Below, one piece after another: positions 5,861-63,274 of a DNA stretch of 64,000 nucleotides. The translations under genes and the position numbers were made by a program. The stretch comes from Mytilus edulis (lineage: Eukaryota). Position 1 is the first letter of the stretch. Each line of letters opens with the position of its first letter. Below the pieces are notes generated by a model. The model searched no databases. It was given only the letters and a program-made list of their open reading frames with translations, and was not told where the DNA came from. Location of the stretch: the NCBI RefSeq assembly GCF_963676685.1, contig NC_092355.1, positions 17,360,001-17,424,000 of the forward strand, in the 5' to 3' direction.

Positions 5861-7546
5861 TTAGGAAACATCAAATAGAAATGCAAATTTAGTTTCATTG
5901 GCAACTAAAAACTTGTTACTTGTTGGTTCGAAATGCATTGCACGCGGCTTACTAAGGCCATCACGAGAGGATAATATTGTCTTGCAACGCTTTCCATCAA
6001 GCGTAATGATGACAACGCTGTTTGTATCCATACTGGCCACATACACGTTTCCATTGTTGTCTACAGCTATACCCTGTGGATATCGCAGGTTTTTTGTATT
6101 CTTAAATGTCCATTTTAAATTTCCAAGGATATCATAGCATGTTACAGAATGGTTGTCTTTATTTGTATAATACATATTGTCACCATACACAGCAACATAC
6201 GAAAAAGATGGCATATCAAGGCAAACAAGTGTCTTTTCTGATTCACCATTCAATTGCACTTCCATTATCCCTTTACCTTCCTTACAGTATACCAGGGTAT
6301 TTTTCTTCAGTGCTATACCATATGGATTTGCACTAGTTTTTATAGATCTCTTTCTCGTTCTGTTGACGTTAATAATATGAATTGATTTTCCAGAATAACC
6401 AGTGGTAACGGCTATGGTATGTTCTCCTTCAATATACGCCATATCAAATGCGGCTGTATTTAGCGCGATGTCTAAATCGTGCGAACAGTTGTCTTTCAAC
6501 GCGATTGTTTTTATACCCTCATTATCAGAAAACAGCATCTGCCCATTTGGCAGAATTGCGCAACCCCTTACATTCCCAGAAGATTTCAAATTTATTTCCA
6601 TTTTGTTGCTTAGTACGATATCATCAATGCATTTGGAAATTACAATAGGTACCATCATCTGAGCTTGTTTGTTTTTGTAACTGTCAATAACAACTTTGAA
6701 CGACTTCGACTCAACACTAACGGACCCAAAACAATCAGCCCTGTCAATGTTTTGTACGTCTTTGTTAACCTCCAAAGCCAGTGTTTTTATCTTCATGTCC
6801 TCGTTCTTAAGGACGGACTGAATACATTCTGCTTTATCAGAAACCTCTTTTTCAATGTGCTTTAATGCTAAAAATGTTTGAAGTTCTGATGCATGTTGCC
6901 TTATGTTATTTTGGTTACCTTGGAGGTCAGAAATTCCCTTTTCAATGTCTTCAATCTCACACAACAACAGCTTTATTCTCTTACTTTCATTTTCTTCATT
7001 AGCATATAATTCTTTAATTGTTTTGTCATGTATTTTGTCTAAGTGGTCGTTGATCATTTTCCGGGTTTGGTTTATATCACGTTCAATCTCTACCCTCTGA
7101 TCCTGTAGACATTTTAAATTTTCTGTGCGATCGTTACGAATTCTTTGTACATTTTTCAACATTTGGACCAATGTTTGCTCTACCTCTAACCACGCATTCG
7201 ATGACTTGACATTTTTGACGATGTCCTCTATTGCTGTCAAATCATTACAATCATTGTGTGTCTCAATAACACACCTCCTACAACACGGGCAATCATGTTT
7301 CTTACAGAATATTTGATAGTGTTCTTTGTGTTTTTGACATGTTTGTGTTATCTCTAACACATTTGGTTGTAGCTTCTGATATTCTGTAATTGACATAGTG
7401 TCATGGTTCCTAGTTGATTTTGATGCACCATGGTGCTCTCTACACTCGCCACAAAGTCCCTCGTCACATTCTGAACACCACACTACTGATGCTTTGTTGA
7501 TGTTTCGGTAATTACATAAACCACAAACAGTCCAATTACTCGCCAT
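5861..7546 (-). CDS. RING-less TRIM-like protein, B-box1/B-box2/coiled coil/NHL beta-propeller (copy 1, A-type, 561 aa)
   Basis: Intact ORF. B-box1 CGLC-x12-CSEC-x4-CGEC-x3-H-x8-H; B-box2 CQKH-x7-CKKH-x4-CRRC-x4-H-x2-C; heptad-rich middle; NHL-like repeats (PYGIAL, YPQGIAVDNNGNVYVA, PRAMHF). True start is MASNW at 7546, preceded by the splice-acceptor-like TTGTTTTTTAG|A. Confidence 0.92.
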   Translation of the reverse strand: MASNWTVCGLCNYRNINKASVVWCSECDEGLCGECREHHGASKSTRNHDTMSITEYQKLQPNVLEITQTCQKHKEHYQIFCKKHDCPCCRRCVIETHNDCNDLTAIEDIVKNVKSSNAWLEVEQTLVQMLKNVQRIRNDRTENLKCLQDQRVEIERDINQTRKMINDHLDKIHDKTIKELYANEENESKRIKLLLCEIEDIEKGISDLQGNQNNIRQHASELQTFLALKHIEKEVSDKAECIQSVLKNEDMKIKTLALEVNKDVQNIDRADCFGSVSVESKSFKVVIDSYKNKQAQMMVPIVISKCIDDIVLSNKMEINLKSSGNVRGCAILPNGQMLFSDNEGIKTIALKDNCSHDLDIALNTAAFDMAYIEGEHTIAVTTGYSGKSIHIINVNRTRKRSIKTSANPYGIALKKNTLVYCKEGKGIMEVQLNGESEKTLVCLDMPSFSYVAVYGDNMYYTNKDNHSVTCYDILGNLKWTFKNTKNLRYPQGIAVDNNGNVYVASMDTNSVVIITLDGKRCKTILSSRDGLSKPRAMHFEPTSNKFLVANETKFAFLFDVS

Positions 7547-13177: not shown

Positions 13178-13314
13178 ACTGTAATGTAACACCGGGATCT
13201 TGACAGCCACCCATCTTATACCACACCATTGTGATGTAAGCACCAGGATCTTGACAGCCTACCATCTTAGAACAGAACAGTGTAATGTAAGCACCAGGAT
13301 TTTGACAGCCACCT
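13178..13314. repeat. Tandem repeat, ~3 x ~50 bp
   Basis: tgtaatgtaagcaccaggatcttgacagcc repeated three times. Confidence 0.8.
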
Positions 13315-20823: not shown

Positions 20824-21926
20824 CCGCTTTCATAACACTTATTTTTAGCATACAGAATATTATGATGTTCTTACTTTTAATTCAGGTCCTGATAAAATTT
20901 TTACACACATCCAGTACTGAAAGAAGTGTTTCAATGAAAGTTTTCGTGTTTTTCTAGGCAGAAATGATTTTGGAATGACATTATACAGGTTGAAAAGAGC
21001 TCAAAAAATTTCATAATGGACAGTGGTCATTTCATCTGAAATTTCACTGTTTCAGGTCGTAAAATTATTGCACAGGTACAATTCATAACAATGAAAAAAA
21101 ACTGTTCAACAACTTTTACAAAGCGAAAAAGAAAGTCGAATAGTGAAGCCCGTAAACAATACTTTTTTAATCTGAGCATGCAAGTTGAAGATTATGTTAT
21201 ACATTTTACAAAAAGCACATTCGCAGAACAAAAACATATATATTCCACGTGTTTTCCGGTTGTAGTAAAATCGTAGTACCCCACAATGCATTGTAGCTCA
21301 TTGAGTCCATTGGTCAGTTTTTCAAGGCCGAATTGGCCTTGTGTTTGGGAAGTTACTATGCAAATATAGTCTGCCGTAAAGAAATCTAGAGTTCTCGACC
21401 TGTTGAAAATTAATATGAAAACTAATTACAAACTATATAGTTTAATTTGGAACACAACATATTTTTCCAAGTAGTCAGTGGCAATTTTTATTTCAATATC
21501 TTGATTACGATACAATGAAATCTTATCCGTGTGGTCATTCATGCGTAGTTACTTAGTACACGGGAAAAGTATGTACTATGAAAATTAGAAGGCACATTCA
21601 AGCAATTTGATTGGACGAGATGTTGTAAGTATGTGCTAAAATGGATATATTTAAATTGTGTTTTGATTTTGTTTTTGTTTCATATTTATTACAAATGTAT
21701 GTAAGCTGCACAACTCTTTATTAAACAAGAATAAATAATTATTAATCAAATTAAAATATGATGTTCTGTGATAAAGACAACGGTTTGGTTATAATTATTT
21801 TCCCATGTTATTGCATAAAATCTTATAACATTTTACAATTATCTGAGAATATGTGCGTAAACATGGTAAATGATAAAAACAATAAATTACAACGAAGTTC
21901 GCAGTTAAAAGTCGACAGTTCTTTTT

Positions 21927-23615
21927 TCAAGAAACATCAAATAGAAATGCGATCTTGTGTTCATTTGCAACTAACAACTTGTTACTTGTTGGTTCGAAAT
22001 GCAATGCGCGCGGAACACGAAGGCCATCACGAATGGACAATATTGTTCTGCAACGCTTTCCATCAGGGGAAATGATGACAACGCTGTGTGTATCCGTACT
22101 GACAACATACACGTTCCCATTGTTGTCTACAGATATACCCTGTGGATATCGTAGATTTTGTTTATCCTTAAATTCCCATTTTAAATTTCCATGGATATCA
22201 TAGCATGTTACCGAATGGTTGTCTTTATTTGTATAATACATATTGTCACCATGCACTGCAACATACGAAAAAGATGGCATACTAAAGCTAACACGTGCCT
22301 TTTCTGATGCACCATTCAATTGAACTTCAATTATTCCTTTACCTAACTTACAGCATACCAGGACAGTTTTGTTCAGTGCTATACCATATGGAGTATCACT
22401 ACTTTGTATAGTTCTCTTGATTGTTTTGCTGTAAGGGTCAATAATGTGAATAACATTTGAACCATAGCCACTTGTAACGGCAATGGAACTTTCTCTTTCA
22501 AAATATGCTAAATCAAATGCGGGTGTACCTAGCGGAATTTCAAACTCATGCATACCGTTGCTTTTCAACACAATTAAATTTTGATTATTATAATCACAGA
22601 ACATCATCTTGCCATTTGGTAAAATTGCGCAACCTCTAACACTTACAGCAGATTGCAAATCAATTTGCATTTTGTTGCTTAGTTTAATATCATATATGCA
22701 TTTGGAAATTAAACTAGGTATCATCATCTGAGCTTCTTTGTTTTTGTTACTCTCAATAACAACTTTGCACGATTTTGAATTAACACTAACGGACCCAAAA
22801 CAATCAGCCCTGCAAAAGTTTTGTACGTCTTTGTTAACCTCCAAAGCCAGTGTTTTTATCTTCATGTCCTCGTTCTTAAGGACAGACTGAATGCATTCTG
22901 TTTTATCAGAAACCTCCTTTTCCATTTTCTTTAATGCTAAAAATGTTTGAAGTTCTGATGCATTTTGCCTTGTGATATTTTGATAACCTTGTAGGTCAGA
23001 AATTCCCTTTTCAATGTCTTCAATCTCACTCAACAACAGCTTTATTCTCTTACTTTCATTTTCTTCATTAGCATATAATTCTTTAATTATTTTGTCCTGT
23101 ATTTTGTCTAAGTGGTCGTTGATCATTTTCCGGGTTTGGTTTATATCACGTTCAATCTCTACCCTCTGATCCTGTAGACATTTTAAATTTTCTGTGCGAT
23201 CGTTACGAATTCTTTGTACATTTTTCAACATTTGGACCAATATTTGCTCTACCTCTAACCACGCATTCGATGACTTCACATTTTTTACGATGTCCTCTAT
23301 TGCTGTCAAATCATTACAATCATTATGTGTCTCAATAACACACCTCCTACAACACTGGCAATCATGTTTCTTACAGAATGTTTGATAGTGTTCTTTGTGT
23401 TTTTGACATGTTTGTGTTATCTCTAACACATTTGTTGGTAGCTTCTGATATTCTGTAATTGAAATAGTTTTATGGTTCCTAGATAATTTTGATGCACCAT
23501 GGTGCTCTCTACACTCGCCACAAAGTCCCTCGTCACATTCTGAACACCAAACTACTGATACTTTGTTGATGTTTCGGAAATTACATACACCACAAATAGT
23601 CCAATTACTGGCCAT
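21927..23615 (-). CDS. RING-less TRIM-like B-box/coiled coil/NHL protein (copy 2, chimeric A-5'/B-3', 562 aa)
   Basis: Intact ORF with the same motifs as copy 1; acceptor TTGTTTTGTAG|A directly before ATG 23615; TGA stop and 3' flank shared with copies 3 and 5. Confidence 0.92.
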   Translation of the reverse strand: MASNWTICGVCNFRNINKVSVVWCSECDEGLCGECREHHGASKLSRNHKTISITEYQKLPTNVLEITQTCQKHKEHYQTFCKKHDCQCCRRCVIETHNDCNDLTAIEDIVKNVKSSNAWLEVEQILVQMLKNVQRIRNDRTENLKCLQDQRVEIERDINQTRKMINDHLDKIQDKIIKELYANEENESKRIKLLLSEIEDIEKGISDLQGYQNITRQNASELQTFLALKKMEKEVSDKTECIQSVLKNEDMKIKTLALEVNKDVQNFCRADCFGSVSVNSKSCKVVIESNKNKEAQMMIPSLISKCIYDIKLSNKMQIDLQSAVSVRGCAILPNGKMMFCDYNNQNLIVLKSNGMHEFEIPLGTPAFDLAYFERESSIAVTSGYGSNVIHIIDPYSKTIKRTIQSSDTPYGIALNKTVLVCCKLGKGIIEVQLNGASEKARVSFSMPSFSYVAVHGDNMYYTNKDNHSVTCYDIHGNLKWEFKDKQNLRYPQGISVDNNGNVYVVSTDTHSVVIISPDGKRCRTILSIRDGLRVPRALHFEPTSNKLLVANEHKIAFLFDVS

Positions 23616-26600
23616 TCTACAAAACAAATGAGTCTTAAATTTTACAAATGGGTGACACTGTAGTTGTTACTTAACAAACAAAATGTGAATATGATATATT
23701 TTTTCATTTGGATGATTATGCTCGGCTTTTCATAGTTCACGGATTTCGATTAGATAATGACAGGTCGTTAAAAAAATACGCCACGGGTGTTGGTGCCACC
23801 CACTACCACGGACAACTTCATGCCTTTCTTGTTATGTCCAGTAGTTGTTATATGTGCAAACTTGATTTCTGTAGATTATTTATGATGTTGTTGTTTTTTT
23901 CATCAAATATGTAACCAACTATTAATATAAACGATATTATCAGTGTATGCTATTTCCTGGCATTCATTTTAGTTAATGCATCACTTGGTTACAATGTCGT
24001 TAATTAATGGGACTACCGACCTAGTTATGCAAATTACCCACGTTGATTTTCCGCCGTCTAAGACTATATTTAAATATATGTAGGGTTACCTTACATACGG
24101 TAAAAGAAATGTGGAATTGTAAAATTAATAATAACATTTTTTAATAAATTTTTTTTAAAAAGTTGCTTTCACGTAACACCTTTTTTCTTAATTTTTTTAG
24201 AAATTTCCCCGATTCGGACATAAACCGGGAAAATTTTGTTATCTACGTTCATAATCGTGGATCACTCAATATATGTTATTGGACATTTCCGTTATTGTCC
24301 CAATATTACCGACTTATTTGTTTGGGTTGTTTGGGTTGTTTCCCTTCAGTCGACACTTATTGAAAATGTTGAGCTAGTGTTAAGAGAGAAGGACGTGTTT
24401 GCCAAATATTGCCTTTTCTTCCAATATAATTATAATAATAAAAAAATTAAAAGGTTCTTAAATTGATCTATTCCAAAGGCCCAAGTGCTAGGGAACAAAT
24501 GATTGTTTTATAAGTGAACATCGAAAGTTCCATAACCCACAATTTGGATGTATACGTATTGTCGAAACTGTGTGCTTTAACGACATTTAATCTTAAGGAA
24601 ATATTAAGCGGCTGCAGCTAAAATGAATTAAGCAAAATAAACTTTTGGTTAAACATTGGTCCAAACTGAATTTCAACACAAATAATGAATAATAGTAATT
24701 AAGAAGTCATTACTGTTTTATTTATGGCTCAGGTTATTTGTCGGGTTTTTGGCCCCATTCATTATTTTTTTTCTTTTTTAAGCTCTTCTGTTTAAACATT
24801 TTTGAATTAAAAATATTTTTACTTTTGGCATCACTAAAAGGACAAGAGCGATCAAAATGAGCACCTTGAAGAGAAATTAGGACCCCGTATTTTATTGCAC
24901 AAACCAGGTAGAATACTAGACTAATGAACTGCTAGACCAGTAATCTATTACGATACTTATATGTTTGGGTTTTTTCTTTTGTTCGACATATTTATAACAA
25001 CCATGTCAATTTCAGCATGCATGTTTAGTGAATGTCGAGTCTGAAGCGTAGGACAACTCACACTTTAAATATCAGCTGTATTTGTACTCTGCTTGAAACA
25101 GGTGTATTAGCTCGCTAAAAGCTTGCATACACCTTGTTTCTTAGCCTCGTACTAATACAGCTGATATTTAAAGACTCTAAACAGTTATTGTCTATGTTCC
25201 TAATTTTTTGTTATTGTTTGACATGTTTAATAAAATATGGAACTTTCAAATATCTAGCCTTGTTCATCACCGAAGAGGAATTAATAGTCGAAATGCGCAT
25301 CTGTGCAATTAGTACAGTTAAATGCCAAAAAAGAGTTTATTTTGTATAAATACTCAAGTAGTAGATTATCTATGTCAAATATGTAGTAATGAAACCCAAT
25401 AAAAAAACGCATTAAAGTTGTAGGATCTAATTATTATTAGATTATCAAGACTGGTGTAGCAACTCTAAATCTGAAATTAAAAATAGTATCCGACAATGTC
25501 AAATAAATCTTGTTTGTGTATAAACAATATAAATATATTGATGAATTGTCGTATTGTTTTTTATTCTTTATTAAAAATTCAGTTTGAACAAGTTCTGGAA
25601 TGATCGATTCTTTAAATAAATAGATCAAAACAATATGTTTTACACTTCAGAGTCTGGATATGGCAACGAATTATAAATTGATGGGCGAAATAATGAAATG
25701 AAGAAAATATGACTAAAAGAATAAAAATAACGACTATTAAGCACCCACTTCCTAGAATCTCATTCTAAAGAGGTCACAATGACATTTTTTTAAGTTCCCT
25801 TATCTGACTGCCTTTAACATTTATAATTATATTCTGTTTATCTGAGAATGAATTAATTTGACTGTCTCTCTGGTATCTTTCGTCCCTCTTTTACATCTCT
25901 CATCGCACATACACGTTCACAGTAATTGAATTGACCATCAAACTACAAACTAAACCAGCAAAGATATTTTTACCAATCTAACAGGTTAAGTTCTTTATAA
26001 CTCACTACTTTTCTATTATAAAAGTAAAGTTTCACATTCTTTAAAAAGGTGTAAGTTCACGAATGGTCAAAGTTGGTCCCAAGATTTTGAATGTTTTTTT
26101 AAATCAGGCCATAATACTACAAACAGGACAAAGAAATTGTTATGATATTACAAAATAACTTAAGTTTTACACATTTTGAATATGACGATGTCTGTTGATT
26201 TCCAATAATTCTTAACCATTTTTAGCATATTTTACTTTATCCGCCATCAAAAATCCAGAACGTTATTGTGTCTAGGGATTCAATCTCATCATTATTAGCA
26301 AATCTTTGTAACAGAGCATTCGTATCCCAGGTTGGGGCAAAGGGATTCCATAGGCTTTTAGGTCTGTAAATGCACACAATCATCGTATTTTGATTTGTAG
26401 CCAAAAATGTACGCGTATCGAGGGATTTCTTTTTACAAGGAAGTAAATCATTTGAAATAGATCCATTGATAAATAACCAAATCTGGTCATTAGGAAATTT
26501 TGCAATAAAGCTGAAGTTCAAGGTTATGCATGTTTTGCAAGGTAGACATTGTGTGTGTCTTAATTGAACTTAGTCTGAATAAACTATTAACATTCCAACT

Positions 26601-34054: not shown

Positions 34055-34098
34055 GCGTCACTGATGAGTCTTTTGTAGACGAAACGCACGTCTGGCGT
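34055..34098 (+). ncRNA. Type I hammerhead ribozyme, intact core
   Basis: GCGUCA CUGAUGA GUCU uuugu AGAC GAAA CGCACG UC UGGCGU. Confidence 0.85.
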
Positions 34099-34413
34099 TA
34101 ATATAAAATTTCAATCCTGGTATCTATGACGAGTTTATTTACACCCACTGAGTCTATGCCACTGCTGGTGTAGATTTATTTCCACGAGGGTATTACCAGC
34201 CCAGTAGTTAGCACTTCTGTGTTGACTTGAGTTATCATTGATTATAATTATAAATCAACTGTTAACACAACTTTTAGTTTTTGAAATACTAAGGCTTTTC
34301 TATATTAGGAATAAATTACCTTAGCTGTATTTGGCAAACCTTTTAGGAATGTTTGGTCCTCAATGCCCTACAACTTCGTACTTTCTTTGGCCTTTATAAC
34401 ATTTTTGATTCTA

Positions 34414-34457
34414 GCGTCACTGATGAGACTTTTGTAGAGGAAACGCGCGTCTGGCGT
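34414..34457 (+). ncRNA. Type I hammerhead ribozyme, stem II mismatched
   Basis: CUGAUGA GACU uuugu AGAG GAAA CGCGCG UC; two stem II mismatches. Confidence 0.65.
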
Positions 34458-45799: not shown

Positions 45800-47488
45800 T
45801 TAGGAAACATCAAATAGAAATGCGGTCTTAGATTCATTGGCAACTAACAACTTGTTACTTGTTGGTTCGAAATGCAATACACATGGACTTCGAAGGCCAT
45901 CACAAGAGGACAATATTGTCCTGCAACGCTTTCCATCAGGGGTAATGATAACCACACTGTTTGTAGCCATACTGGCAACATACACGTTTTCATTGTTGTC
46001 TACGGATATACCCTGTGGATATTGCAGGTTTTGTCTATTCTTAAATGTCCATTTTAAATTTCCATGGATATCATAGCATGTTACAGAATGGTTGTCTTTA
46101 TTTGTATAATACATATTGTCACCATACACAGCAACATACGAAAAGTGTGGCATAATAAATTGAACAAGTGCCTTTTCTGATTCACCATTCCATTGAACTT
46201 CCATTATTCCTTTACCTGACTTACAGTATATCAAGGCATTATCATTTAGAGCAATCCCATACGGATATTCACTACTTTGTATAGTTCTCTTGATTGTTCT
46301 GCTGTTAGCGTCAATAATGTGAATAACATTTGAACCATAGCCACTTGTTACGGCAATGGAATTTTCTCTTTCAAAATATGCTAAATCACATGCGCCTGTA
46401 TTTAGCCGAATTTCAAACTCATGCATATCGTTGCTTTTCAACCCAATTACATTTCCTTTAGTATAATCACAGAACATCATCTTGCCATTTGGTAGAATTG
46501 CGCAACCTCTAACACTTCCAGTAGATTTCAAATCAATTTGCATTGTGTTGCTTAGTTTGATATCATCTATGCATTTGGAAACTAAACTTGGTATCATCAT
46601 CTGAGCTTCTTTGTTTTTGTTACTGTCAATAACAACTTTGCACGATTTTGAATTAACACTTACGGACCCAAAACAATCAGCCCTGCAAATGTTTTGTACG
46701 TCTTTGTTAACCTCAAAAACCAGTGTTTTTATCTTCATGTCCTCGTTCTTAAGGACGGACTGAATACATTCTGCTTTATCAGAAACCTCTTTTTCAATGT
46801 GCTTTAATGCTAAAAATGTTTGAAGTTCTGATGCATGTTGCCTTATGTTATTTTGGTTACCTTGGAGGTCAGAAATTCTCTTTTCAATGTCTTCAATCTC
46901 ACACAACAACAGCTTTATTTTCTTGCTTTCATTTTCTTCATTAGCATATAATTCTTTCATTATTTGGTCCTGTATTTTGTCTAAGTGGTCGTTGATCATT
47001 TTCCGGGTTTGGTTTATATCACGTTCAATCTCTACCCTCTGATCCTGTAGACATTTTAAATTTTCTATGCGATCGTTACGAATTTTGTGTACATTTTTCA
47101 ACATTTGGACCAACATTTGCTCTACTTCTAACCACGCATTCGATGACTTGACATTTTTGACGATGTCCTCTATTGCTGTCAAATCATTACAATCATTATG
47201 TGTCTCAATAACACACCTCCTACAGCACGGGCAATCATGTTTCTTACAAAATGTTTGATAGTGTTCTTTGTGTTTTTGACATGTTTGTGTTATCTCTAAC
47301 ACATTTGTTGGTAGCTTCTGATATTCTGTAATTGAAATAGTGTCATGGCTCCTAGTTGACTTTGATGCACCATGGTGCTCTCTACACTCGCCACAAAGTC
47401 CCTCGTCACATTCTGAACACCACACTTCTGATGCTGTGTTGATGTTTCGGAAATTACATACACCACAAACAGTCCAATTACTCGCCAT
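45800..47488 (-). CDS. RING-less TRIM-like B-box/coiled coil/NHL protein (copy 4, A-type, 562 aa)
   Basis: Intact ORF, MASNW start at 47488 after acceptor TTATTTTGTAG|A; TAA stop and 3' flank (aaagttcacagtag) shared with copy 1. Confidence 0.9.
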   Translation of the reverse strand: MASNWTVCGVCNFRNINTASEVWCSECDEGLCGECREHHGASKSTRSHDTISITEYQKLPTNVLEITQTCQKHKEHYQTFCKKHDCPCCRRCVIETHNDCNDLTAIEDIVKNVKSSNAWLEVEQMLVQMLKNVHKIRNDRIENLKCLQDQRVEIERDINQTRKMINDHLDKIQDQIMKELYANEENESKKIKLLLCEIEDIEKRISDLQGNQNNIRQHASELQTFLALKHIEKEVSDKAECIQSVLKNEDMKIKTLVFEVNKDVQNICRADCFGSVSVNSKSCKVVIDSNKNKEAQMMIPSLVSKCIDDIKLSNTMQIDLKSTGSVRGCAILPNGKMMFCDYTKGNVIGLKSNDMHEFEIRLNTGACDLAYFERENSIAVTSGYGSNVIHIIDANSRTIKRTIQSSEYPYGIALNDNALIYCKSGKGIMEVQWNGESEKALVQFIMPHFSYVAVYGDNMYYTNKDNHSVTCYDIHGNLKWTFKNRQNLQYPQGISVDNNENVYVASMATNSVVIITPDGKRCRTILSSCDGLRSPCVLHFEPTSNKLLVANESKTAFLFDVS

Positions 47489-49643: not shown

Positions 49644-50576
49644 ATCACTACTCAATTATTGTCTATGTTTTTTTTTTTTTTTTTTTTATTTGTTCGACAT
49701 GTTTAATAAGATATGGAACTTTCAAACATCTTGTTCGTCCCCGTAGAGGCATTTGTGGTCACAATGCGCATTTGTGCAGCGCAATTATTAAAGTTAAATG
49801 CCAAAAAAGAGTTTATTTTGTATGAATACTGAAGTAGTAGATTATCTATGTCAAATATGTAGTAATGAAACCCAATCAAAAAAGCATTAAAATTGTAGGA
49901 TTTATTTATTATTAGATTATCAAGACTGGTGTAGCTACTCTAAATCTGAAATTAAAAATATTATCCGACAATGTCAAGTAAATCTTGTTTGTGTATAAAC
50001 AATATAAATATATTTATGAATTGTCATAAATCAGTGTTTTTATTCTTTATTAAAAGTTCAGTTTGAACAAGTTCTGGAATGATCGATTTTTTTAAAGAAA
50101 TAGATCAAACAATATGTTTTACACTTCAGAGTCTGGATATGGCAACGACGCCAATAATCAAATATTGAATCGATAGGAGATAAACTGTAAATATTTGAAC
50201 ATACAGTTTTGGGGTTTTTTTCCATTAATTTCCCCTATTACGGTATCAATAAAAAAAAATATGTTCTAATGAACTCAAAATCGTTTTTTCGCACTTTTTT
50301 TTATTTTTTCCGCTTATGCGCAGAAATCTACTTCCTTATTCCGTTCTCGTTTGTCATGGGACTTTGAGATAGCGTTAATTTGTTTACATTGAATATAACG
50401 TCATAACTTAAATAGCGTCACAACTAAAATCTCTAACAACAGAACCAAAATCGGAAACATAACGGTATTTCTGTTTCCTTTTTAACAGATTTTGAAGTTA
50501 TAATATGTTTGAATTAAAAATAAATCAAACAGACTTCGTTCCTTTTCACAGGTAATGCCTGCCTCATATTAAATTA

Positions 50577-51530
50577 TATGCTCGTGTATGTAACAACGTA
50601 TTAGATTTTAGCGAGAGAACTTTCTGTATTACTGAAAAATTATTACACCGGGGTTTTCGATATTACAAACTAGTCAAAACATTTACTAAATTGTATCATC
50701 GGTATAAGGAAATAATTCGTAAATATAACTCAACATGCAGACATCTTATACGTTCAGGTATTTCATATCCAATCATTCATGGTAATATTTTTTATAAAGC
50801 ACAAAAATGTCAGTATTTACCTCGAAAGCTTACAAAACCTTTAAACAGACTTATTAAGAATGGATATGGTTACGATACTGTTGTCAGGTCATTAAAGATT
50901 GCATATTTTGGCTTTAATATTGATTCACTTATAGTGTCTTTGCATCGGAACTAAACACATTTATTTAAAAAACAGTTGTTTGCATAACACGGGTTATGTT
51001 CTTCTCATATATTTGATGATAGTATAATACTAAACCCCTAACGGGAGGGATTGTACCTGATATTCATATGACGAAGACATAATCTTTCAATCAGGTTAAT
51101 TGAGGTCTGGAGCTGGCATGTCAGTTAACTGCTAGTAGTCTGTTGTTATTTATGTATTATTGTCATTTTATTTATTTTCTTTTGTTACATCTTCTGACAT
51201 CGGACTCGGACTTCTCTTGACCTGAATTTTAATGTGCGTATTGTTATGCGTTTAATTTTCTATATTAGCAACAGGTATAGGGGAGGGTTGAGATCTCATA
51301 AAACATGTTTAACCCCGCCGCAATTTTGCGCATGTCCCAAGTCAGGAGCATCTGGCCTTTATTAGTCTTGTATGATTTTTAATTTTAGTTTATTGTGTAT
51401 AATTCAGAGTGTAGTATGACGTCCATTATCATTGTACTAGTGTACATATTAAATAAGAGGCCAGCTAAAGGACGCCTACGGTTGCGGGAGTTTCTAGCTA
51501 CATTGAAGACCTATTGGTGACCTTCGGCTG
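50577..51530 (+). mobile_element. 5'-truncated Penelope-like retroelement fragment, second family
   Basis: YARVCNNVLDFSERTFCITEKLLHRGFRYYKLVKTFTKLYHRY aligns with YSRACISYHDFLDRWLLLTRKLLKQEFQLVKLKSSLHKCYGRH of the 27.4-kb RT; continues as track ORF 50691..50954, then UTR-like sequence. Confidence 0.75.
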
Positions 51531-53783
51531 TTTGATATTTGATAAATAAATCATTCTGTATTTTTATTTCCGTATGTAAAACCAAGGCGTTAAGATACTG
51601 ATGAATAATTGGCATACCTGTTACCTTAGATACCATATTGTTACCCGAAGGATTTGTTATTTGTCTTTTTAAAGTAATATGTTTATTTTGAATGCAATAA
51701 AATGATCCCAGTAAACATTTTTTTTTAATTTTATAACTTATTTACTATACACTTATAAGTCTCCGCACACAACCTCGTTGATGTTTGTTACCTTGATTGT
51801 TGACTGACCTGTTCCTCATCGATGTTCTTAGATTAAAGCATTGGTAAACTATTGTTGAATTGATTTATTTCTGATACATATTTTTATCATTTGAGTACCA
51901 ATCTACCTAGGAATGAGGCAGTGGTGACAACATGACAAGGACACACCCGTTCAACCTTACATTAATTCACGTTCAGAATGTTTAGTGCATACTGGTAAAT
52001 ATAACTTTTTTTTTTCTTTCCCTGTGTTTGGTGATTCAAGATATAATTTGATTGAAATGGACTAGAAATTAACTCCGTATTGGAATACCTTTAAAATAGG
52101 GTAAGTAGGTCGGTCAGATTTTTTCAGACATGTTTTGAGAATTTTCTAAATTCAATTTGCCTGATTCATAAAAAGACTTGCAAGATATTGATATGTGTTG
52201 ACATTTAGAATACGTATATATGTTACAAGATCTGGCAATTTTATAAACTCTGCACGTTTAGAATAAAATAAGATGGAAATTATATGTATGACACCAATGG
52301 AATATTACTTAGACATTAAAACAACTGATCCTATCTTTATTAATTTTACTTGCAAGTGTTATTCAATAAACAACTATAAAACAATAATTATAGCTAGGAC
52401 ACCTATCGTTGTATTTACATTTTCGGCAATGCCAGTTTATTTGGTTATCGTATTATAATTTTAACGTACATGTTAATTAAGTGTCGTTAAGTGTAGATTT
52501 GCAAAGCGGATTTGCAAACAACGTAATCCACATACCTTGACTTTGCAATTTCTACAACTTCTAATATCCTTGATTAATTGTGTATCCGCCCCATAATGGA
52601 TACTCTTAACATTATATAACGTATTTGATAACACTATATATAGTATCACAATTTAAAAGATATCAGAATAGATTATATTTTTCTGATCTGAATTGAGTGC
52701 GTCTGAACTATCAATTTATGTTTTACATTTAAATATTTCCCATTATTTATCCATGGTGATAGGCGTTGAATTAATGATTTCAACTGTCCCTGTCATCAAG
52801 ATACTATGTTTATTTATATATAAACTATATTTAACAGCTGAATATTCGTGTTATTCCCTGTGGTTTTCTGGGGACAAAAAACGGATAAAAACAACTTAAA
52901 ACATTGCAGTTCTTTAAGAGAGAAGACGCAAACTTGATAAGTTTAAGGTTTGTTTTGAGCATTTTTACAAATTGTCGATTCTTTTCAAATGGTTGCAAAC
53001 GTTTAATTTATACAATACAGCTTGATAAAGTAAGAGACAAGTAAAAGGTTTATTAAGTCATGTTTTAATAACTTTAGTTGTCTTATTTCAATGTTATCAG
53101 TTTTAGCTTTTAAGGGATTTCTCACAAAATCCAAACATAATTAAGATCCTAGGAAACTGTGATCACTCCCAAAAAGAATTAAGAAGTTTGTGTTACATAG
53201 TCTTTATAGTTTTATGTATACTGCACTGTTCTGTAAACTTTTCGTGTAGTGTCATGACATTGACATTACTGAAGTTAAGAGTTGTGAATATCATCTTTAT
53301 ATGTTCAACTTCCTTTAACTGTATGAAAATTAGAACACTACTTTAATTTTTATGACAATAATATTTTTTTTTCATTTTACTGAAACATATGCCATTATGA
53401 TATTGAGAATTGAAATAAAGATGTTAATCATAACTTAAGAAATATATATAACAAAAGGTATATAAAGAAAGATACAGAGGGTCACTCATAAAAACATGTT
53501 TTTTATTTTCATTTGTTGACTGAAAAATATGCCATTATGATCTTGATATTAGAAAGGGTTTTGCTCATATCTTATGAAATATATATGTAATGTTATTCGA
53601 TAGATTTTTAACACATTGATGCGTTATAATTCGTTATGATATTTGATTTTAAGAATCCAAAGTTTCTGCAAAATTCTACATCTAAGAATGTAAACCAATC
53701 AGACAACAACAAGAGGTTTCTAAAGAAAGATACCTAGGGTCATCCAAAGCTAAGTCGGTATAATATGACAATGCCAAGGCAAC

Positions 53784-53969
53784 ATCAATAACGATGAGTA
53801 AACAGCCTCTATATTCAAAACTACAGATTGAGCAAAAAGAACCCCACAAAAACCCTTTGGTGGTCTAAGGTAATAACGATCAATAACGATGGGTAAACAG
53901 CCTCTATATTCAAAACTACAGATTGAGCAAAAAGAACCCCACAAAAACCCTTTGGTGGTCTAAGGTAAT
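53784..53969. repeat. Tandem duplication, 2 x 95 bp
   Basis: atcaataacgatg..ggtctaaggtaat at 53784 and 53879. Confidence 0.9.
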
Positions 53970-55287
53970 CTGGGATAATATGCAGACTCTGCTCGTCGAG
54001 AGACACCCATTGTTTTACATGTTTTACTCTTTGTGAGAAAAGTCTGAAGTATTTTGTAAAAGAAAATGGTCCTGTACAGTATAATATCATACACAAGTTT
54101 GGCTTACTAGTGTTTGTGATGGCTCTTGTAGTTATAAAAAAACTTAAAAGGGGGCTTTAAATGCATTTTTATGTTTATTTTGGCTTCTCCATACTTTTTT
54201 AAAAGATATTTGTCTGTCAATACCCAGTAATGACAGACAAATAAGTTAATAAAATATTACAATGAAATTCGGGCAATCGATAGTTCTAATATAGTTTTGA
54301 ATAACCTTTGACGTTGAGAGGTTTAGCATGATATCCTTACACACTTTGAGGTTTGATGCTTCCAAAAAGATTTACAACTTTATTTTAACATTTAAATAGA
54401 GGTTTAAATCCAGCAAAAAACATAAATGAAAAACATTAAGTCCAGAAAAATTAAACAAATTTTCGCGCGTATTTCATAGGACGAAGTTGTAATACGACTT
54501 TTAAAAAAAGAATGAAAAAAATGTGTTGTTAGATATCTGAAAACTATCACATGCATTATAAATTCGTTTTTTTATAGTATATTTACATGTAATATTATAT
54601 AGATCTAACGATTTGCTGTCATGTACATGCCAACCTAACCATAATTTTAGAATGATTCTTAAATCAAATACTAGTAGACAGTGTGTTCTTATAAACATTT
54701 AATGATTTCATGTATTAAACAAACAGTTCAGTCTATATACTACACGCATAACGATAGCAAACATAGCTTCCGAATTTATTGAAACAGCGAAAATAAAAAT
54801 ATATGCAATTGGTAATTGAAATTGGAAATATGCCACTTAGTTTAATTCGCTGTGTCTTTTACTGAAATATATTAGTTAACCGTTTAAAAAAGAGGGGCGA
54901 AAGATACAAGAGGGACAGTCAAACTCATAGATCGAAAATTAACTGACAACGCCATGTCTAAAAACTAAAAAAACAAACAGACAAATAATACTACAAAGGA
55001 TACAACCTAGAAAAGGGAATGAACAAGCAACACGGACCCCGCCAAAAAAAATTGGGTATTCTCAGGTGCTCCGGAAGGCTAAACAGATCCTGCTCCACAT
55101 GTGGCACTCGTCGTGTTGTACATGTTATTACAAACCCGGTAAATAGCTAGTCTAATGTGTTTAACTGACACATACACACAAGTATTATATTTCTATAATG
55201 ATTTCTACCTGCGCTTAAAACGACAATGATGTAAGTATCCACGACTGTCTATAGATGCAGCATATGAATATTTAAGATTTGTTCTAT

Positions 55288-56642
55288 GAGGGGGGGCTAG
55301 ACCATTTTCGGGACGCCGGGATCGGCTGATTTTAGCAACGGGAAATCGGGATTGCCTTGTTTAAAGATCGGGAATTCGGGATAGAAAAACATTGGGATAC
55401 GGGAAAGCCAAGTTTTTAGCCACGGGAAATTGGGATTATTATGTTGAAATATAACGGGATTGACAAACAACTGTACCTTGGACAAATAAAAGTGCCATTT
55501 TCATTATACTTCAATTAGAATCGCATCTAGAAACAGAGTAGATCCAGATCAGAGTACATGTAAACCCCAAGGGTGACTGAGTTGACTTGGTCTTCTCCCG
55601 ACCGGCAGTTACACGCTTGCTGAAGTTGGGCGTCGGTTTGGCTGTGCGGGATGTATCATGTTCGCAGTCACGTCGGTCAGAATGGGGACTTAAATCGGAT
55701 GCCTCGTGTAAAGAGAGTGCCATGCTCTTTGCACGTTAAGAACCCTTGCAACAACTCTTTGAGGCCTGTTGCAAGGCAAAATTTCTGTCCCTATCCAATC
55801 TACCCTCATTTTCCAGTGGCAGTCCAAATATCTCCGACCATCATTCCCTGAAAGAGCCTCTATTATGACAAGACCTACATATTGTATTTATTGTGAACTT
55901 GTTCTCGTCCTGAATATGCATGAAGTATTTGCCACTGGACGTTAAGCAACCAACAATCAATCAAATCAATAAGAGTACATGTAACAGTAAGTTTAGAGAT
56001 AAGCTTTGAGCTCGGATCAGGTCTTTAATTATACCGTTTACTAAACGATTTTGATTTAATTACATATATAAACTTCCTGTAGCAGACGATGTATTTTGCA
56101 GAAGATTCTCAAGTTATATCAATTAGAACCCTTTTGTTGTTCCACAAAGACGAACATTCCTTAAGGAAAAAACAAACATTGTGCTAAAGGACAGCAAAAG
56201 CTTCGGTCACTGACTTAAACAAATTTAAATAATGTGTTATCAATTATTTTGGAATTAATGAATCGGCCTGTGAAAAAGGAATGGGGAGAAATGTTAATAC
56301 AAAGATAGGACGGCAATACAAAGATGACAAGGGAAAAGTAATAAACTTTTCCATTTATACACAGCATCAATGGGATCACGAGAAAACATTCCTTCAAACT
56401 GAAAGATCAAATTTGATAGGTGCATGTAGAAAATTATCTCTCTCTGTTATAGTACTAATAAGTATTCATTCAATCAACTTGAAAATATCGACGTTTAAAT
56501 CGTAAGCATTGAAACTTTAAACTTTTAAATTTTGGAACAAATTTATCGGGATCGGGATTTTTAACAAAATATGTCCGGGATTTCGGGATTTTCTGATATT
56601 AAAACCGGGAAATCGGGATGAGACCCCCTCTAGCCCCCCCTC
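55288..56642. mobile_element. Non-autonomous TIR DNA transposon, 13-bp TIR, 6-bp TSD
   Basis: TIR GAGGGGGGGCTAG (55288-55300) / CTAGCCCCCCCTC (56630-56642); TSD TTCTAT (55282-55287, 56643-56648); paralogous empty site tttgttctatctct at ~30731-30744. Confidence 0.9.
55564..55971 (+). mobile_element. SINE (Meta-core-like, RTE-type tail) nested in the TIR element
   Basis: 13-bp TSD AGAGTACATGTAA (55551-55563, 55972-55984); internal GCACGTTAAGAACCC; 3' GGACGTTAAGCAACCAACAATCAATCAAATCAAT tail. No tRNA-like head recognised. Confidence 0.75.
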
Positions 56643-59605
56643 TTCTATCTCTATCTTGTATATTTTATCAATAATGGTGTGTGTTTGAAGAACGTATAAT
56701 GTTATCAGATAAGATGTTTTGTTAACCAATCATGATGTCCAACATTTGAGCAATGAAATAGAATGAATTATTACACAATAAATCAAAGTAAATAAATTAG
56801 AGTGATAAAAGTACATTTAAACAAAAAACATGTATACACATTTTGCAATATAAACAATATAATTGACATAACCTAACTGTGCTCAACTTCGACTCGACAT
56901 TAACTGACTTAACATTGGACTCAATGCATCCTCTACTTGTTCATTACTCACAGACGAAAGAGATTTTTCTTCGTGCCTTCGCTTTAAATACCAAACTGAA
57001 CCATCTTTTTCAATGTGCTTAAATGCTAAAAATGTGTGTAGTTTTAAAGACATGTTGTTGTATTTTATTCTAATTAACATGTAAATCAGAAAATCGTTAT
57101 CCTCAATCGTTGACAACGCATGTTAAATTGTCTTGCTTAGATTTTTGTTTTTGCATATATTTCGTTTAATAGATTCTCTTGTAATTTGTTTAATGGATCG
57201 TTCATCAATGCACTCGTGAAAGGTTTATTATTTCAATATGTTATGCCACAATTCGACCATCATTTGTTTTACCACAAGAAATGCATTATTGGTATGTGAT
57301 TTTATATTTTTAACAGTTTTATCGATTTCCCTCTGATCTGTACATTATATCTTTATAACACATCGTCTTGAATACCTGGTGAAGATTAATCCAGAAAAGC
57401 GCTTTTGATGCATGGAATTTATAACATTTTGTTTTCATTGTATCCACAACAAGAACAATCATACTTCTTGCAGACACGTTAGTGTGATTTTTGGTAAATT
57501 CAACGGTAGTTTCTGGTGCTCTGTAACAGGTATAATGCTAAGTTATATAGATGCAATTACTGCACAATGTTATCTACACCCTTCACAAAGTCCCTAATCA
57601 CAGACGAAACACCGCACAACAGACGATTGTTGTATGTTTGTGAAGCTACAATTGCCACACACTGAATAATTATTAGCAATAATTAAAACCAAAACCAAAA
57701 ACTTAATTTGACATAATTATGCCTAAATAGATTGTATGGTCTCCTTTTTGCGATACCAGTGGGCGTTTTGCACGTTTTTGTTTTCAGTGATGATCAAGGC
57801 CAGAATTTTCGAAAACCAAAACGTTGATATAAAAGTTGATGCGCTGCTACAGTCAAAAGAGACCAAATGTTTTTCAAAACCCGGATAATTCATAGAGAAC
57901 TGTAAAATGTTTACAAGGAACATCAAGGGTTTTTTTGTGAAGTTTTTTTTAATGATACAGTCAAGTTGACATAGTAATGTCTTCAAAAATGTGTTTTAGT
58001 TAAAAAAAAATATTGAACATAGGAAGACGATTCCTTATTATCAAATAAAAAGTGTAAGGCGTTGAATTTCCTGCTATAAAAGACAATTCTTAATTTTTTC
58101 AAAATTTTTAGTTTCTATTTCCTAAATTATCAAACAAAGGCTTATAGAAAGGACAGCATTGGTGCTTATTCAATGTGACAATTACCCACCACTTAACACC
58201 AACATACGTATGTCTTGCTAATAAATATATATCTCAAGCCTTGTGCAATAATTGCAAACATCCGAATGAATTTCGTTATGCATGCATGTATAATTTAATC
58301 AAGCATGCTGGAGACCAATAATATGGAAAGCTACACTTATGAAACTTTGGGTGTTGTGGGCATTCATATAAATATATAAATATTTACAAAGGGCAATAAG
58401 TTTATTGATGAAACACAATTATTGTCAATAACGAATGCCAATTTATAATTTCCAAAATCAAATGTGTAGTTTTAGATTATCAATGAATGGTGTATTAGTT
58501 GTTTAAAATTTATAAACTACGCGTCAAACAATCATTACAAAAGTATTTTCTATAATAAGTAAAACGAAGACAGCCGCATGTCTCATTAAAATGAATTAAA
58601 TGAAATTGTTCGATATAATAATTATATAACCTAAATCTTCATTAATTAGTCGTCAAAGGAATTACCTCTAAGAGAAACCGTCGTTACGAGAACTCGATGA
58701 AGGAGGAATAATAGTCATTACATCAAGAAGAGTGCATGTGAGTTGTGGGAGTGTGAGACAACATAGAACATAAATATGTATATGACAGACAGATTCCTTT
58801 TCTTTTTGTCTTCAGCTGTATTTAGTTCTCTTATATTTGATACGTTTCCCTCAGTTTAAGTTTGTAACCCGGATTTGTTTTTTCTCTATCGATTTATGAG
58901 TTTTGAACAGCGGTATACTACTGTTGCCTTTATTTATATTCCACGTACAAATTTCAAATTTTCAAAACGTATTTTTGTAAAGAAATAAAAGGAATAGGTG
59001 CCTAGTGCAACTCAATTGCGTGTTGGGGCATAAATGTCGAAAACCAAAAAATTCCCAATACAATCTATGTGTTAGTGTAGAGGGAATGCCACATATACCA
59101 CATATATAATAACTCTGAAGTCGAAATCATACTGACAATTGAGAAATGACCAATAGACAAACAGCAATGCACAAATCACAATATAGAAAAACTCAAAAAT
59201 GGGGAATACGAACTCTTCATAAATCGGAGCGATTACATGATCTCCGGAATAGTAAGCTGATCTGACTCCACATGTGACACTCGCCGGGTTTCTCCTTTAA
59301 AATGTGTTTATAAGTTGTATCACGTCATAATACAATGCGCAATACCTTACTGTTAACTGACTTTTATCTAACCTTTAGACATCATTAAAGTTAAACACTA
59401 TATATTCAAATATTTCATATATATTTCAATCAATAATACTTAATCAAATCGAAATTTTGAAATTAAAACATCTTTTCATAAAACACGATAGATAACGGGT
59501 ATCAACAGCATATGCATTTAAGAAAACTCTACGAACATCTATAAAAACTAAAGCATACGAAACACAAACCCGATCGCAGGTGTTCGGGAAACATTTTTGA
59601 TTCGA

Positions 59606-59649
59606 GCGCCACTGATGAGTCTTTTGTAGACGAAACGCACGTCTGGCGT
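59606..59649 (+). ncRNA. Type I hammerhead ribozyme, intact core
   Basis: GCGCCA CUGAUGA GUCU uuugu AGAC GAAA CGCACG UC UGGCGU; the stem I U-G pair is C-G here. Confidence 0.85.
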
Positions 59650-59964
59650 TAATATAAAATTTCAATCCTGGTATCTATGACGAGTTTATTTACACCCACT
59701 GGGTCGATGCCACTGCTGGTGTAGATTTATTTCCACGAGGGTATTTCCATCCCAGTAGTTAGCACTTCTGTGTTGACTTGAGTTATCATTGATTATAATT
59801 ATAAATCAACTGTTAACACAAATTTTAGTTTTTGAAATACTAAGGCTTTTCTATATTAGGAATAAATTACCTTAGCTGTATTTGGCAAACCTTTTAGGAA
59901 TGTTTGGTCCTCAATGCCCTACAACTTCGTACTTTCTTTGGCCTTTATAACATTTTTGATTCGA

Positions 59965-60008
59965 GCGTCACTGATGAGTCTTTTGTAGAGGAAACGCGCG
60001 TCTGGCGT
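59965..60008 (+). ncRNA. Type I hammerhead ribozyme, one stem II mismatch
   Basis: CUGAUGA GUCU uuugu AGAG GAAA CGCGCG UC UGGCGU. Confidence 0.72.
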
Positions 60009-60636
60009 AAATATAATAAAATTTCAATCCTGGTATCTATGATGAGTTTATTCATAGAACTTTGTTCTTGTTATAAACAATCGACGGATGCTATTTGCGC
60101 TGCAATATCTCAATTTAACATTCTTTTAGGTGTTCCAGTATTCTCCCGACTCTGAGTAAGTGTGCATGTTGCTAATTCCTACGTTTTCTGTTCAATGCTT
60201 TATAGAATGATGTAAGTCTTTTCTTTCTGATGGCTATGGTGCTGTTTTTGTCTAAGACTTTATAATTCTGATTGTCCTGTTTGTATCTTATGTCTCTATT
60301 CTTAACTAAAATAATGGTGTCCTGTTGGTAATAATGTCCTAAACTTTGTTGCTGGTGCATTTTTACTCTTTTATAATATTTTGTCTTACTACCAAGAATT
60401 ATGCGTGCGTTTTATGTGATATAAACATATACGAACGTATCGTGTTTTTCTAAACACATATTTGTAATTTATCGAAAATAAAACAAGGACGAATTTTACT
60501 TAAAAATACCAGTTACTAACATGTGGAACTACGCAGTTTGAAAAGCGTCAACATTTTTAGGAATGAAAGTAACGCTACTTGAATAGATCAAGTTTTGGTT
60601 AAAAGAGATTGATTCAAAATGAAGCAGTTTCCCAAA

Positions 60637-61585: not shown

Positions 61586-63274
61586 TCAAGAAACATCATA
61601 TAGAAATGCGGACTTGTTTTCATTTGCTACTAACAACTTGTTAATTGTTGGTTCGAAATGCAATCCACGCGGAATATTTAGGCCATCACGAGAGGACAAT
61701 ATTGTTCTGCAACGCTTTCCATCAGGGGAAATGATGACAACGCTGTGTGTATCCCTACTGACAACATACACGTTTTCGTTGCTGTCTATAGATATACCCT
61801 GTGGATATCGCAGATTTTCTGTATCTTTAAATTCCCATTTTTGATTTCTATGGATATCATAGCATGTTACAGAATGGTTGTCTATATTTGTATAATACAT
61901 ATTGTCACCATGCACAGCAACATACGAAAAAGATGGCATATTAAGACGAACAAGTTCCTTTTCAGATTCACCATTCAATTGAACTTCCATTATTCCTTTA
62001 CCTGACTTACAGTATACCAGGACATTTTTATTCAGTGCTATACCATATGAATATTCACTGCTTTGCATAGTTCTCTTGATCGTTCTGCTGTTAGGGTCAA
62101 TAATGTGAATAACATTTGAACCGAAGCCACTGGTAACGGCAATGGAATTTTCTCCTTCAATATACGCCATATCAAATGCGCGTGTATCTAGCCGAATTTC
62201 AAACTCATGCGTACCGTTGCTTTTCAACCCAATTAAATTTCGATTATTATAATCACAGAACATCATCTTGCCATTTGGTAAAATTGCGCAACCTCTTAAA
62301 CCCCCAGAAGATTTCAAATTTATTTCCATTTTGTTGCTTAGTACGATATCATCAACGACTTTTGAAATTACAATAGGTACCATCATCTGAGCTTCTTTGT
62401 TTTTGTTACTGTCAATAACAACTTTGCACGACTTTGACTCAACACTGACGGACCCAAAACTAGCAGTGTTGCAAATGTTTTGTACTTCTTTATCAATAAC
62501 CAATGAAAGGGTTTTTATTTTCATGTCCTCGCTTTTCAGGACAGACTGAATAATCTCTTCTTTGTCCAAAATCTCCTTTTCAATGTGCTTTAATGCTAAA
62601 AATGTTTGTAATTCTGATGCATGTTGTTTGATGGTATTTTGGTTAACCTGTAGGTCCGAAATTCCCTTTTCGATCTCCCCAATCTCAGACAACTACTGAT
62701 TAATTTTCTTACTTTCATTTTCTTCATTAGCATATAATTCTTTTATTATAGTCTCTTGCACTTTGTCTAAATGGTCGTTGATCGTTTTTCGGGTTTGGTT
62801 TATATCACGTTCAATCTTTACCCTCTCATCCTGAAGACATTTTAAATTGTCTGTGCGGTCATTACGAAGAATTCGTACATTTTTCAACATTTGGACTAGT
62901 CTTTGCTCTACCTCCAGAAAGGCATTCGATGATTTGACATTTTGGACGATATCATCTATGGCTGTTAAATCTTTACACTCATTATGCGTCTCTATAACAC
63001 ATCTTCTACAACACGGGCAGTCATGTTTCTTACAGAATGTTTGATATTGCTCTTTGTGTTTTTGACATGTTTGTGTTATCGCTAACACATTTGATGGTAG
63101 CTTCTGATATTCTGTAATTGAAATAGTGTCATGGTTCCTAGTTGATTTTGATGCCCCATGGTGCTCTCTACACTCGCCACAAAGTCCCTCGTCACATTCT
63201 GAGCACCACACTACTGATGTTTTGTTGATGTTTCGATATTCACATACACCACAAACAGTCCAATTACTCGCCAT
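61586..63274 (-). pseudogene. TRIM-like B-box/coiled coil/NHL copy 5 (B-type) with one in-frame TAG in the coiled coil
   Basis: ORFs 62693..63301 and 61586..62692 are in the same frame and abut. SKKINQ*LSEI aligns without gaps to SKRIKLLLCEI of copy 1 (TTG->TAG at 62693-62695). Total length 1689 nt, same as copies 2 and 4. Confidence 0.88.

Follow-up and report, generated by a model that had tools for sequence, protein, structure and literature searches.

Diversifying selection on the top face of the NHL propeller in a tandem array of RING-less B-box genes of Mytilus edulis

The blue mussel Mytilus edulis carries on C12 a tandem array of at least 22 genes that encode two B-boxes, a coiled coil, and a six-bladed NHL propeller, with no RING. 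Approximately 12 positions in the b-c and d-a loops, which form the top face of the propeller, are under diversifying selection among these genes, and purifying selection acts on the propeller core and on the scaffold made up of the zinc-binding modules and the coiled coil. Five of the copies lie in the window that we analyzed, a 64 kb stretch (C12:17360001-17424000, 17.36-17.42 Mb); positions given below are window positions unless prefixed with C12, and residues are numbered throughout as in copy 2. Taken together, the results make it probable, in our judgment, that this is a RING-less B-box/NHL array of at least 22 genes with diversifying selection on the top face, the copies of which bind variants of a fast-changing ligand.

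The five homologous open reading frames (ORFs) in the window are all on the minus strand, 10-16 kb apart, with one coding exon per copy:

Copy 1, 5861-7546, minus strand: intact, 561 amino acids plus stop; an annotated NCBI protein.
Copy 2, 21927-23615, minus strand: intact, 562 amino acids plus stop.
Copy 3, 35461-37151, minus strand: pseudogene with 1-bp insertions at ∼35980 and ∼35599; listed as array member L016.
Copy 4, 45800-47488, minus strand: intact, 562 amino acids plus stop.
Copy 5, 61586-63274, minus strand: pseudogene with an in-frame TAG at codon 194 (62693-62695), which is TTG in the other copies; listed as array member L008.

The initial annotation of this stretch had described five B-box/coiled-coil/NHL copies in tandem, and their presence is confirmed. 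The motif strings that it quoted from homologous positions of the propeller were also recovered, all six sets of them, although copy 3 is readable with homologous strings only after its two inserted bases are skipped. Its description of the genes as five recent copies stands in part: the five are present, but they belong to a larger array, and two of them (copies 3 and 5) are broken in the single assembly used, in which copies 1, 2, and 4 are intact.

We used copy 2 as the reference for domain architecture. An AlphaFold2 (AF2) model of this copy, built from a 94-sequence alignment, has a mean predicted local distance difference test score (pLDDT) of 83.8 and contains two zinc modules, helices of approximately 100 residues (117-218) and 27 residues (221-247), a disordered linker, and the propeller. 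The features of copy 2 are as follows:

23616-23635, minus strand: pyrimidine tract ending in TAG, from the sequence alignment.
23466-23594, minus strand: B-box1, ANCHR-like, residues 8-50 (Pfam PF22586), with invariant Cys/His.
23301-23414, minus strand: B-box2, residues 68-105 (PF00643, above the cut-off in copies 1, 4, and 5), with invariant Cys/His.
22875-23267, minus strand: coiled coil, residues 117-247, from the AF2 model.
21933-22682, minus strand: six-bladed NHL propeller, residues 312-561, with 24 strands and pLDDT >90.

Every copy has a Pfam match to PF22586 (residues 8-50) that reaches the cut-off or falls slightly under it. The match to PF00643 covers residues 68-98, and copy 2 has a weak hit to this family at another place. 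Matches to NHL/SGL-type propellers in Pfam are weak, with the NHL repeat near threshold. The best Foldseek matches are the NHL domains of Thin/TRIM32, TRIM2, TRIM3, NHL-2, Brat, and Mei-P26, and those of Thin, TRIM2, TRIM3, NHL-2, and Brat give target-normalized TM-scores of 0.70-0.77 with E values from 1e-15 to 1e-13. A profile of the family matches the TRIM3/TRIM2 NHL domains at E ∼1e-14 to 1e-13, Brat at 5e-10, and TRIM71 at 1e-8, and its positions 11-207 align to the B-box/coiled-coil (RBCC) region of TIF1-beta (E 1.3e-10). The near-invariance of the zinc ligands reported in the initial annotation is borne out: the ligands of both B-boxes are kept in all five copies, the sole change being H38Q in copy 3, which keeps the neighboring H39. 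Across the 94-sequence family alignment, C8, C11, C27, C32, C35, C70, H73, C81, H84, C89, C92, H97, and C100 are invariant.

The absence of a RING, likewise part of the initial description, is upheld by two kinds of search. No RING-like pattern (C3HC4 or C3H2C3) is found in the stop-free stretches of all six frames of the 64 kb window, and Pfam detects no RING in any copy; the annotated proteins (561-562 amino acids) begin at B-box1. A RING exon hidden elsewhere in the window was considered and rejected on the six-frame pattern search. Pfam likewise gives no filamin match, and residues 248-311, the linker between coiled coil and propeller, are modeled by AF2 as two short strands and a disordered stretch. 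The architecture is thus B-box1, B-box2, a TRIM-type coiled coil, and a six-bladed NHL propeller, with neither RING nor filamin domain. Set against the strict definition of TRIM/RBCC proteins, the mussel proteins have the B-boxes and the coiled coil and lack the N-terminal RING; set against class VII of the TRIM-NHL proteins, they have the six-bladed C-terminal NHL domain and lack the filamin domain.

For the selection tests, we aligned the codons of the 11 intact copies of the C12 array. Averaged over whole domains, the ratio of nonsynonymous to synonymous substitution rates (dN/dS, Nei-Gojobori, ratio of means) is <1 throughout, with values of 0.28 in B-box1, 0.12 in B-box2, 0.27 in the coiled coil, 0.66 in the linker, and 0.57 in the NHL domain. 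Site models were then fitted with our own implementation of GY94/F3x4 on trees and branch lengths from IQ-TREE, and the M0 log-likelihoods match those of IQ-TREE exactly. The N-terminal half (codons 1-285), with an omega of 0.27, gives no indication of positive selection (M2a vs M1a, twice the log-likelihood difference (2ΔlnL) of 0.5). In the C-terminal half (codons 286-564), the same comparison yields 2ΔlnL of 70.7 (p = 4e-16), M8 vs M7 yields 88.4, and M8 vs M8a yields 64.9. Under M2a, the selected class in this half has an omega of 6.2 and takes in 4.9% of sites; a further 34% evolve at omega 1, and 61% at omega 0.2. When the propeller is divided into three segments, each with its own tree, selection is significant in blades 1-2 (p = 3e-9, omega2 10.7) and in blades 5-6 (p = 0.011). 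Pooled pN/pS ratios, which need no tree, are 0.76 in the bottom loops, 0.39 in the strands, 0.23 in the B-boxes, and 0.34 in the coiled coil.

Twelve sites have a posterior >0.9 for the selected class: 325, 343, 345, 361, 365, 407, 408, 424, 443, 448, 534, and 555. To place them, the 24 strands were assigned to blades by the register of the NHL motif (P-x-G-[IV]-x-V-D = strand a), the first strand closing blade 6, and faces were assigned from the strand topology together with the published definition, by which the top surface of an NHL domain consists of the b-c and d-a loops; Brat binds RNA through this surface (PMC4015489). Ten of the 12 sites fall within b-c or d-a loops (hypergeometric p = 3e-5), and all 12 lie at most one residue from such a loop (hypergeometric p = 2.5e-6). 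None is among the 46 bottom-loop residues (Fisher test of top against bottom loops, 0.0035). Because successive loops of the chain lie on opposite faces, the clustering on one face does not depend on which face is named the top. The same polarity is seen at greater depth in 81 paralogs of <50% identity: the entropy of alignment columns reaches 2.48 bits in the top loops, against 1.48 bits for bottom loops and 1.43 bits for strands (p = 2e-7), and every top loop is higher in entropy than the bottom loops that flank it.

The initial annotation had proposed that the variable positions map to top-face loops, and had suggested a codon alignment of the paralogs and mapping onto an AlphaFold model as the check. 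With both carried out, all 12 selected sites lie in or adjoining the b-c and d-a loops defined by the strands of the AF2 model, a subset of the variable sites is well above a dN/dS of 1 in the site models, and the selected sites overlap five of the six motif clusters that had been named.

We next consider whether the pattern is peculiar to C12. The arrays of the same family on C1, C7, and C10 were analyzed in the same way. The C1 array (6 copies, 89-94% identical) gives p = 1e-8 with all seven selected sites in top loops, and the C7 array (7 copies) gives p = 6e-5 with all three in top loops; M2a is nonsignificant in the C10 array, where 4 copies afford low power. Positions 343, 365, 408, and 448 are selected in both C12 and C1, and positions 325 and 343 in both C12 and C7. 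For an overlap of at least 4 sites, p is 1e-4 when the whole propeller is considered and 0.006 when the top zone alone is. Selection on the top face thus recurs, partly at the same positions, in the independent arrays on C1 and C7. The agreement of site models, structural mapping, and two independent arrays establishes that the sequence variation among copies is not chance.

A six-frame search of the whole genome places the C12 array at C12:17354440-17741495, approximately 390 kb, with all of its at least 22 copies on the minus strand. Eleven of the 22 are intact, and the other 11 carry stops, frameshifts, or truncations. The same six-frame approach found more than 50 full-length relatives, at 38-44% identity, clustered on C1, C6, C7, and C10. 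Both the copy and the relative counts are lower bounds, as 77 of 2635 first-look candidates were scored. NCBI annotates genes of the family as uncharacterized, TRIM2-like, or TRIM71-like. A crown group of array copies, which includes copies 2 and 4, has 85-90% mutual identity; the best match of these copies among M. trossulus proteins is 81-82% and among M. coruscus proteins at most ∼75-77%. The crown copies are therefore closer to each other than to proteins of either species, which indicates that much of the expansion, or a homogenization, is specific to the M. edulis lineage. With its tandem clusters, lineage-specific duplicates, and pseudogenes, the family evolves by birth and death, and the initial annotation, which had raised this mode of evolution, is supported by an array in which half of the copies are pseudogenes.

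The array member L019 (C12:17354440-17356125, 5.5 kb before the window) is intact and divergent, with 59% identity to copy 2. Its identity to one protein of M. trossulus (80%) and one of M. coruscus (75%) exceeds that to neighboring array members. It may be an older founder, orthologously conserved, at the array edge.

Exchange between copies has also shaped the array. Among the intact copies of the window, the B-box/coiled-coil half shows a synonymous divergence (dS) of 0.03-0.12, against 0.20-0.32 for the propeller. Trees of the N- and C-terminal regions conflict with good support, and the three propeller segments give different trees. Copy 1 is a mosaic: its N-terminal half groups with the crown clade of copies 2 and 4, its propeller with the distant L012, L019, and L013. 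The low N-terminal dS and the conflicting trees imply that the contrast between coiled coil and propeller is partly one of coalescence depth, brought about by exchange, and not only one of selection. The initial description of very similar coiled coils beside variable propellers accordingly captures a real contrast but one that owes part of its extent to gene conversion, since dS is low there as well. The flanks of copies 3 and 5 point in the same direction. The 3′ flank of copy 3 (28235-35083) and that of copy 5 (52263-60633) are 93-98% identical and collinear over approximately 7 kb, whereas the adjoining gene bodies are less similar than their flanks, at 85.6%; identity drops sharply at 35083/60633, where copy 5 has approximately 580 extra bases. 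This suggests a recent segmental duplication of two units, followed by replacement or conversion of the gene bodies. The array thus evolves by tandem duplication, frequent pseudogenization, and gene conversion or recombination between copies, and such exchange offers a way to shuffle combinations of loops.

In another M. edulis assembly, the nearest relatives of copies 1 and 2 carry most of their differences from these copies in the propeller. Top loops account for 18 of the 29 propeller differences between copy 2 and its nearest relative. Copy 1 has two relatives at ≥90% identity, and top loops hold just 5-6 of the 18-19 differences from them, with no concentration there; the differences from one of the two are clustered in blade 1 and resemble a conversion tract.

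Several observations weigh against the interpretation of the array as a set of copies selected to bind variants of a ligand. Half of the array copies are dead, so the array is partly decaying, and the pseudogene calls are based on one assembly. Blades 3-4 are nonsignificant when analyzed with the tree of their own segment (p = 0.10). Recombination inflates site-model tests, which we handled by segmenting the alignment; branch lengths were fixed from M0, and the site posteriors are naive empirical Bayes values from 11 sequences. Taken as a class, the top loops are near neutrality, with pN/pS of 1.19 (confidence interval 0.87-1.71). Reads mapped to copy 2 and its flanks at ≥97% identity add little: one true RNA sequencing (RNA-seq) run, of which 6% was read, has no reads on copy 2, and another, of which 18% was read, has a few at 22967-23360, in the N-terminal half, with variants that may come from paralogs. 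Two contig sets, the RNA origin of which is a guess and not recorded, cover 21391-23557, that is, the coding sequence plus approximately 500 nt downstream, and leave the flanks uncovered except for two short high-copy repeats. This coverage looks transcript-like, and with its RNA origin guessed, expression of an intact copy is weakly indicated. Finally, no interferon-stimulated response element or interferon regulatory factor element (ISRE/IRF-E), NF-kB site, or gamma-activated sequence (GAS) is conserved in the proximal 1.5 kb upstream. The null result for these immune motifs says little, because the promoter probably lies beyond an intron in the 5′ untranslated region (5′UTR). A pyrimidine tract and TAG stand immediately 5′ of the ATG in all five copies, by sequence alignment, and are probably the acceptor of such an intron; an acceptor directly before the ATG would put the promoter further upstream and imply a noncoding first exon.

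Two short elements upstream of copy 2, at 24996-25060 and 25857-25893 (35-65 nt), attract many RNA-seq reads and high-depth contigs, and the contigs extend at either end into unrelated sequence. Each element is probably a fragment of a transcribed, high-copy repeat resembling a short interspersed nuclear element or a miniature inverted-repeat transposable element (SINE/MITE-like).

These observations could be taken to mean that the array is decaying and largely nonfunctional, that its pattern reflects relaxed constraint together with gene conversion, and that omega >1 is an artifact of recombination and tolerant loops. The 11 broken copies of 22, the clear mosaicism, the weak evidence of expression, the one segment that is nonsignificant with its own tree, and a whole-class pN/pS of the top loops compatible with 1 would all fit. 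We nevertheless regard this account as very unlikely. The intact copies are constrained, with approximately 61% of codons in the propeller half at omega 0.2 and the N-terminal half at 0.27, and neutral decay predicts omega of ∼1 rather than 5-10 at a few sites. No selected site lies in the bottom loops, although these are just as exposed, the same face and partly the same positions are selected in two independent arrays, and recombination does not explain clustering on one face.

If the top face is a binding surface, the nature of the ligand becomes the next issue. One possibility is that the copies are RNA-binding repressors like Brat and LIN-41 with diversified RNA specificities, for example, for viral or transposon motifs or hairpins, and that the bound RNA is repressed or decays. 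The domain order is that of Brat (two B-boxes, coiled coil, NHL, no RING), the nearest folds and sequences are those of TRIM-NHL RNA binders, Brat binds RNA with the same top face (PMC4015489), and aromatic residues are abundant in the top loops (4-11 per copy, compared with 0-2 in the bottom loops). In canonical TRIM-NHL proteins, however, the top face is electropositive (PMC4015489), whereas the top-loop residues of the 11 intact copies have a net charge of approximately 0 (-4 to +2), a figure that is a crude residue count and not a surface potential. On this count, RNA binding as in Brat/LIN-41 is not favored, and we consider diversified RNA repressors unlikely.

A second possibility concerns the purpose of the diversification. 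The family might serve a diversifying function outside defense, for example in the compatibility of gametes or of self and non-self, in controlling the doubly uniparental inheritance of mitochondria, or in regulating endogenous targets specific to each paralog. Nothing in the sequence links the family to immunity, the upstream regions having no conserved ISRE, NF-kB, or GAS motif, and the TRIM-NHL proteins of model animals work in development and in germline RNA control. Against this, a pseudogene fraction of 50%, an expansion specific to the species complex, and omega values of 5-10 at focal sites are seen most typically where host and parasite are in conflict, an argument by analogy only. 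On balance, we find a role outside defense quite unlikely.

Returning to copies that bind variants of a fast-changing ligand, the following mechanism can be proposed. The top face would be the ligand-binding surface, and each copy would bind a different variant of the ligand, which is more likely a protein or another non-nucleic-acid molecule than RNA. As dimers formed through the coiled coil, or as assemblies mediated by the B-boxes, the proteins would probably sequester the ligand or bring in partners and not work as E3 ligases themselves. As to function, the foremost guess is defense against viruses, transposons, or other intracellular parasites. The signaling sensors that the initial annotation put forward, and any immune role, are inference only. 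A broader scheme is possible but doubtful, in which the family constitutes a large germline-encoded repertoire of cytosolic receptors on an NHL scaffold: the top loops would serve as variable recognition loops directed against viruses, transposons, transmissible cancer, or other intracellular parasites, conversion would shuffle the loops, and the proteins would act through coiled-coil/B-box assembly or through RING-bearing partners.

No ORF of at least 150 amino acids occurs in the spacers of the 64 kb window, outside the five copies, and Pfam finds no match in the four that were scanned among the spacer ORFs of 90-132 amino acids. Two stop-free spacer stretches without a Pfam match, at 27591-27914 (plus strand, 108 amino acids) and 50556-50951 (plus strand, 132 amino acids), may be remnants of mobile elements. 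An Rfam scan of the whole window at the gathering threshold returned nothing, including in 33880-34501, a stretch that had been considered a putative hammerhead retrozyme.

Among known systems, the closest in architecture is Drosophila Brat, together with the C. elegans TRIM-NHL proteins of the NCL-1/NHL-2 type, which share with the mussel genes the order B-box1, B-box2, coiled coil, NHL and the lack of a RING. Fold and profile matches to Brat are significant, and its binding surface is the top face of b-c and d-a loops, the face under selection in the mussel array. Brat, however, is conserved, exists as a single gene with a role in development, and binds RNA through an electropositive top face, while the mussel genes form dozens to hundreds of paralogs in tandem arrays, with one coding exon each and half of them pseudogenes, and have top loops that are approximately neutral in charge and under diversifying selection. 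The vertebrate class VII TRIM-NHL E3 ligases (TRIM2, TRIM3, TRIM32, and TRIM71) have the B-box, coiled-coil, and NHL modules in common with the mussel proteins and provide the best structural and sequence matches, but the mussel proteins are without RING and without filamin. The filamin/IG-FLMN domain is absent from Brat and TRIM32 as well.

The mode of evolution sets the family apart from these relatives. In the TRIM5/finTRIM families, the C-terminal recognition domain is under positive selection that is focused on its surface loops. Within the TRIM genes as a whole, those of the TRIM-NHL type are placed in the conserved "group 1", which has 1:1 orthologs, and the "group 2" TRIMs are clustered, fast-evolving, species-specific, SPRY-bearing, and absent from invertebrates (PMC2533329). 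The mussel NHL genes behave like the fast-evolving group 2 and unlike class VII of group 1. TRIM5alpha/TRIM22 and the fish finTRIM proteins, with their B30.2/SPRY domains, are, like the mussel array, clustered lineage-specific birth-and-death families, these being group 2 properties (PMC2533329). The mussel family differs from TRIM5alpha and finTRIM in having an NHL propeller in place of B30.2/SPRY, in its lack of a RING and hence of autonomous E3 signaling, and in its invertebrate host.

An expansion of B-box genes in bivalves has been recorded before: Regan et al. (2021) list OG708, a B-box zinc-finger orthogroup with 8.9 genes per bivalve vs 0.1 in other taxa (PMC8382680). That report is at the level of orthogroup counts, unlike the present array-level analysis. 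In open-access papers and bioRxiv full text, we found no description of the array structure of this family in bivalves, of its gene conversion, or of selection on the NHL top face. The family is of the birth-and-death, TRIM-like recognition kind, using an NHL propeller instead of B30.2 and having no RING.

These findings support the notion that the NHL scaffold, the textbook slow-evolving developmental regulator with 1:1 orthologs, acts in the mussel like the fast-evolving antiviral SPRY TRIMs of vertebrates. Approximately 12 defined positions, putatively specificity-determining, are now available together with their natural variants. Bivalves have no adaptive immunity and show extreme presence/absence variation, and their expanded recognition families (C1q, fibrinogen-related domain proteins (FReD), and Toll-like receptors (TLR)) are mostly extracellular; the present array adds an intracellular candidate to them. 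If the proposed recognition role is true, the family would be an invertebrate counterpart of the TRIM5/finTRIM B30.2 repertoires.

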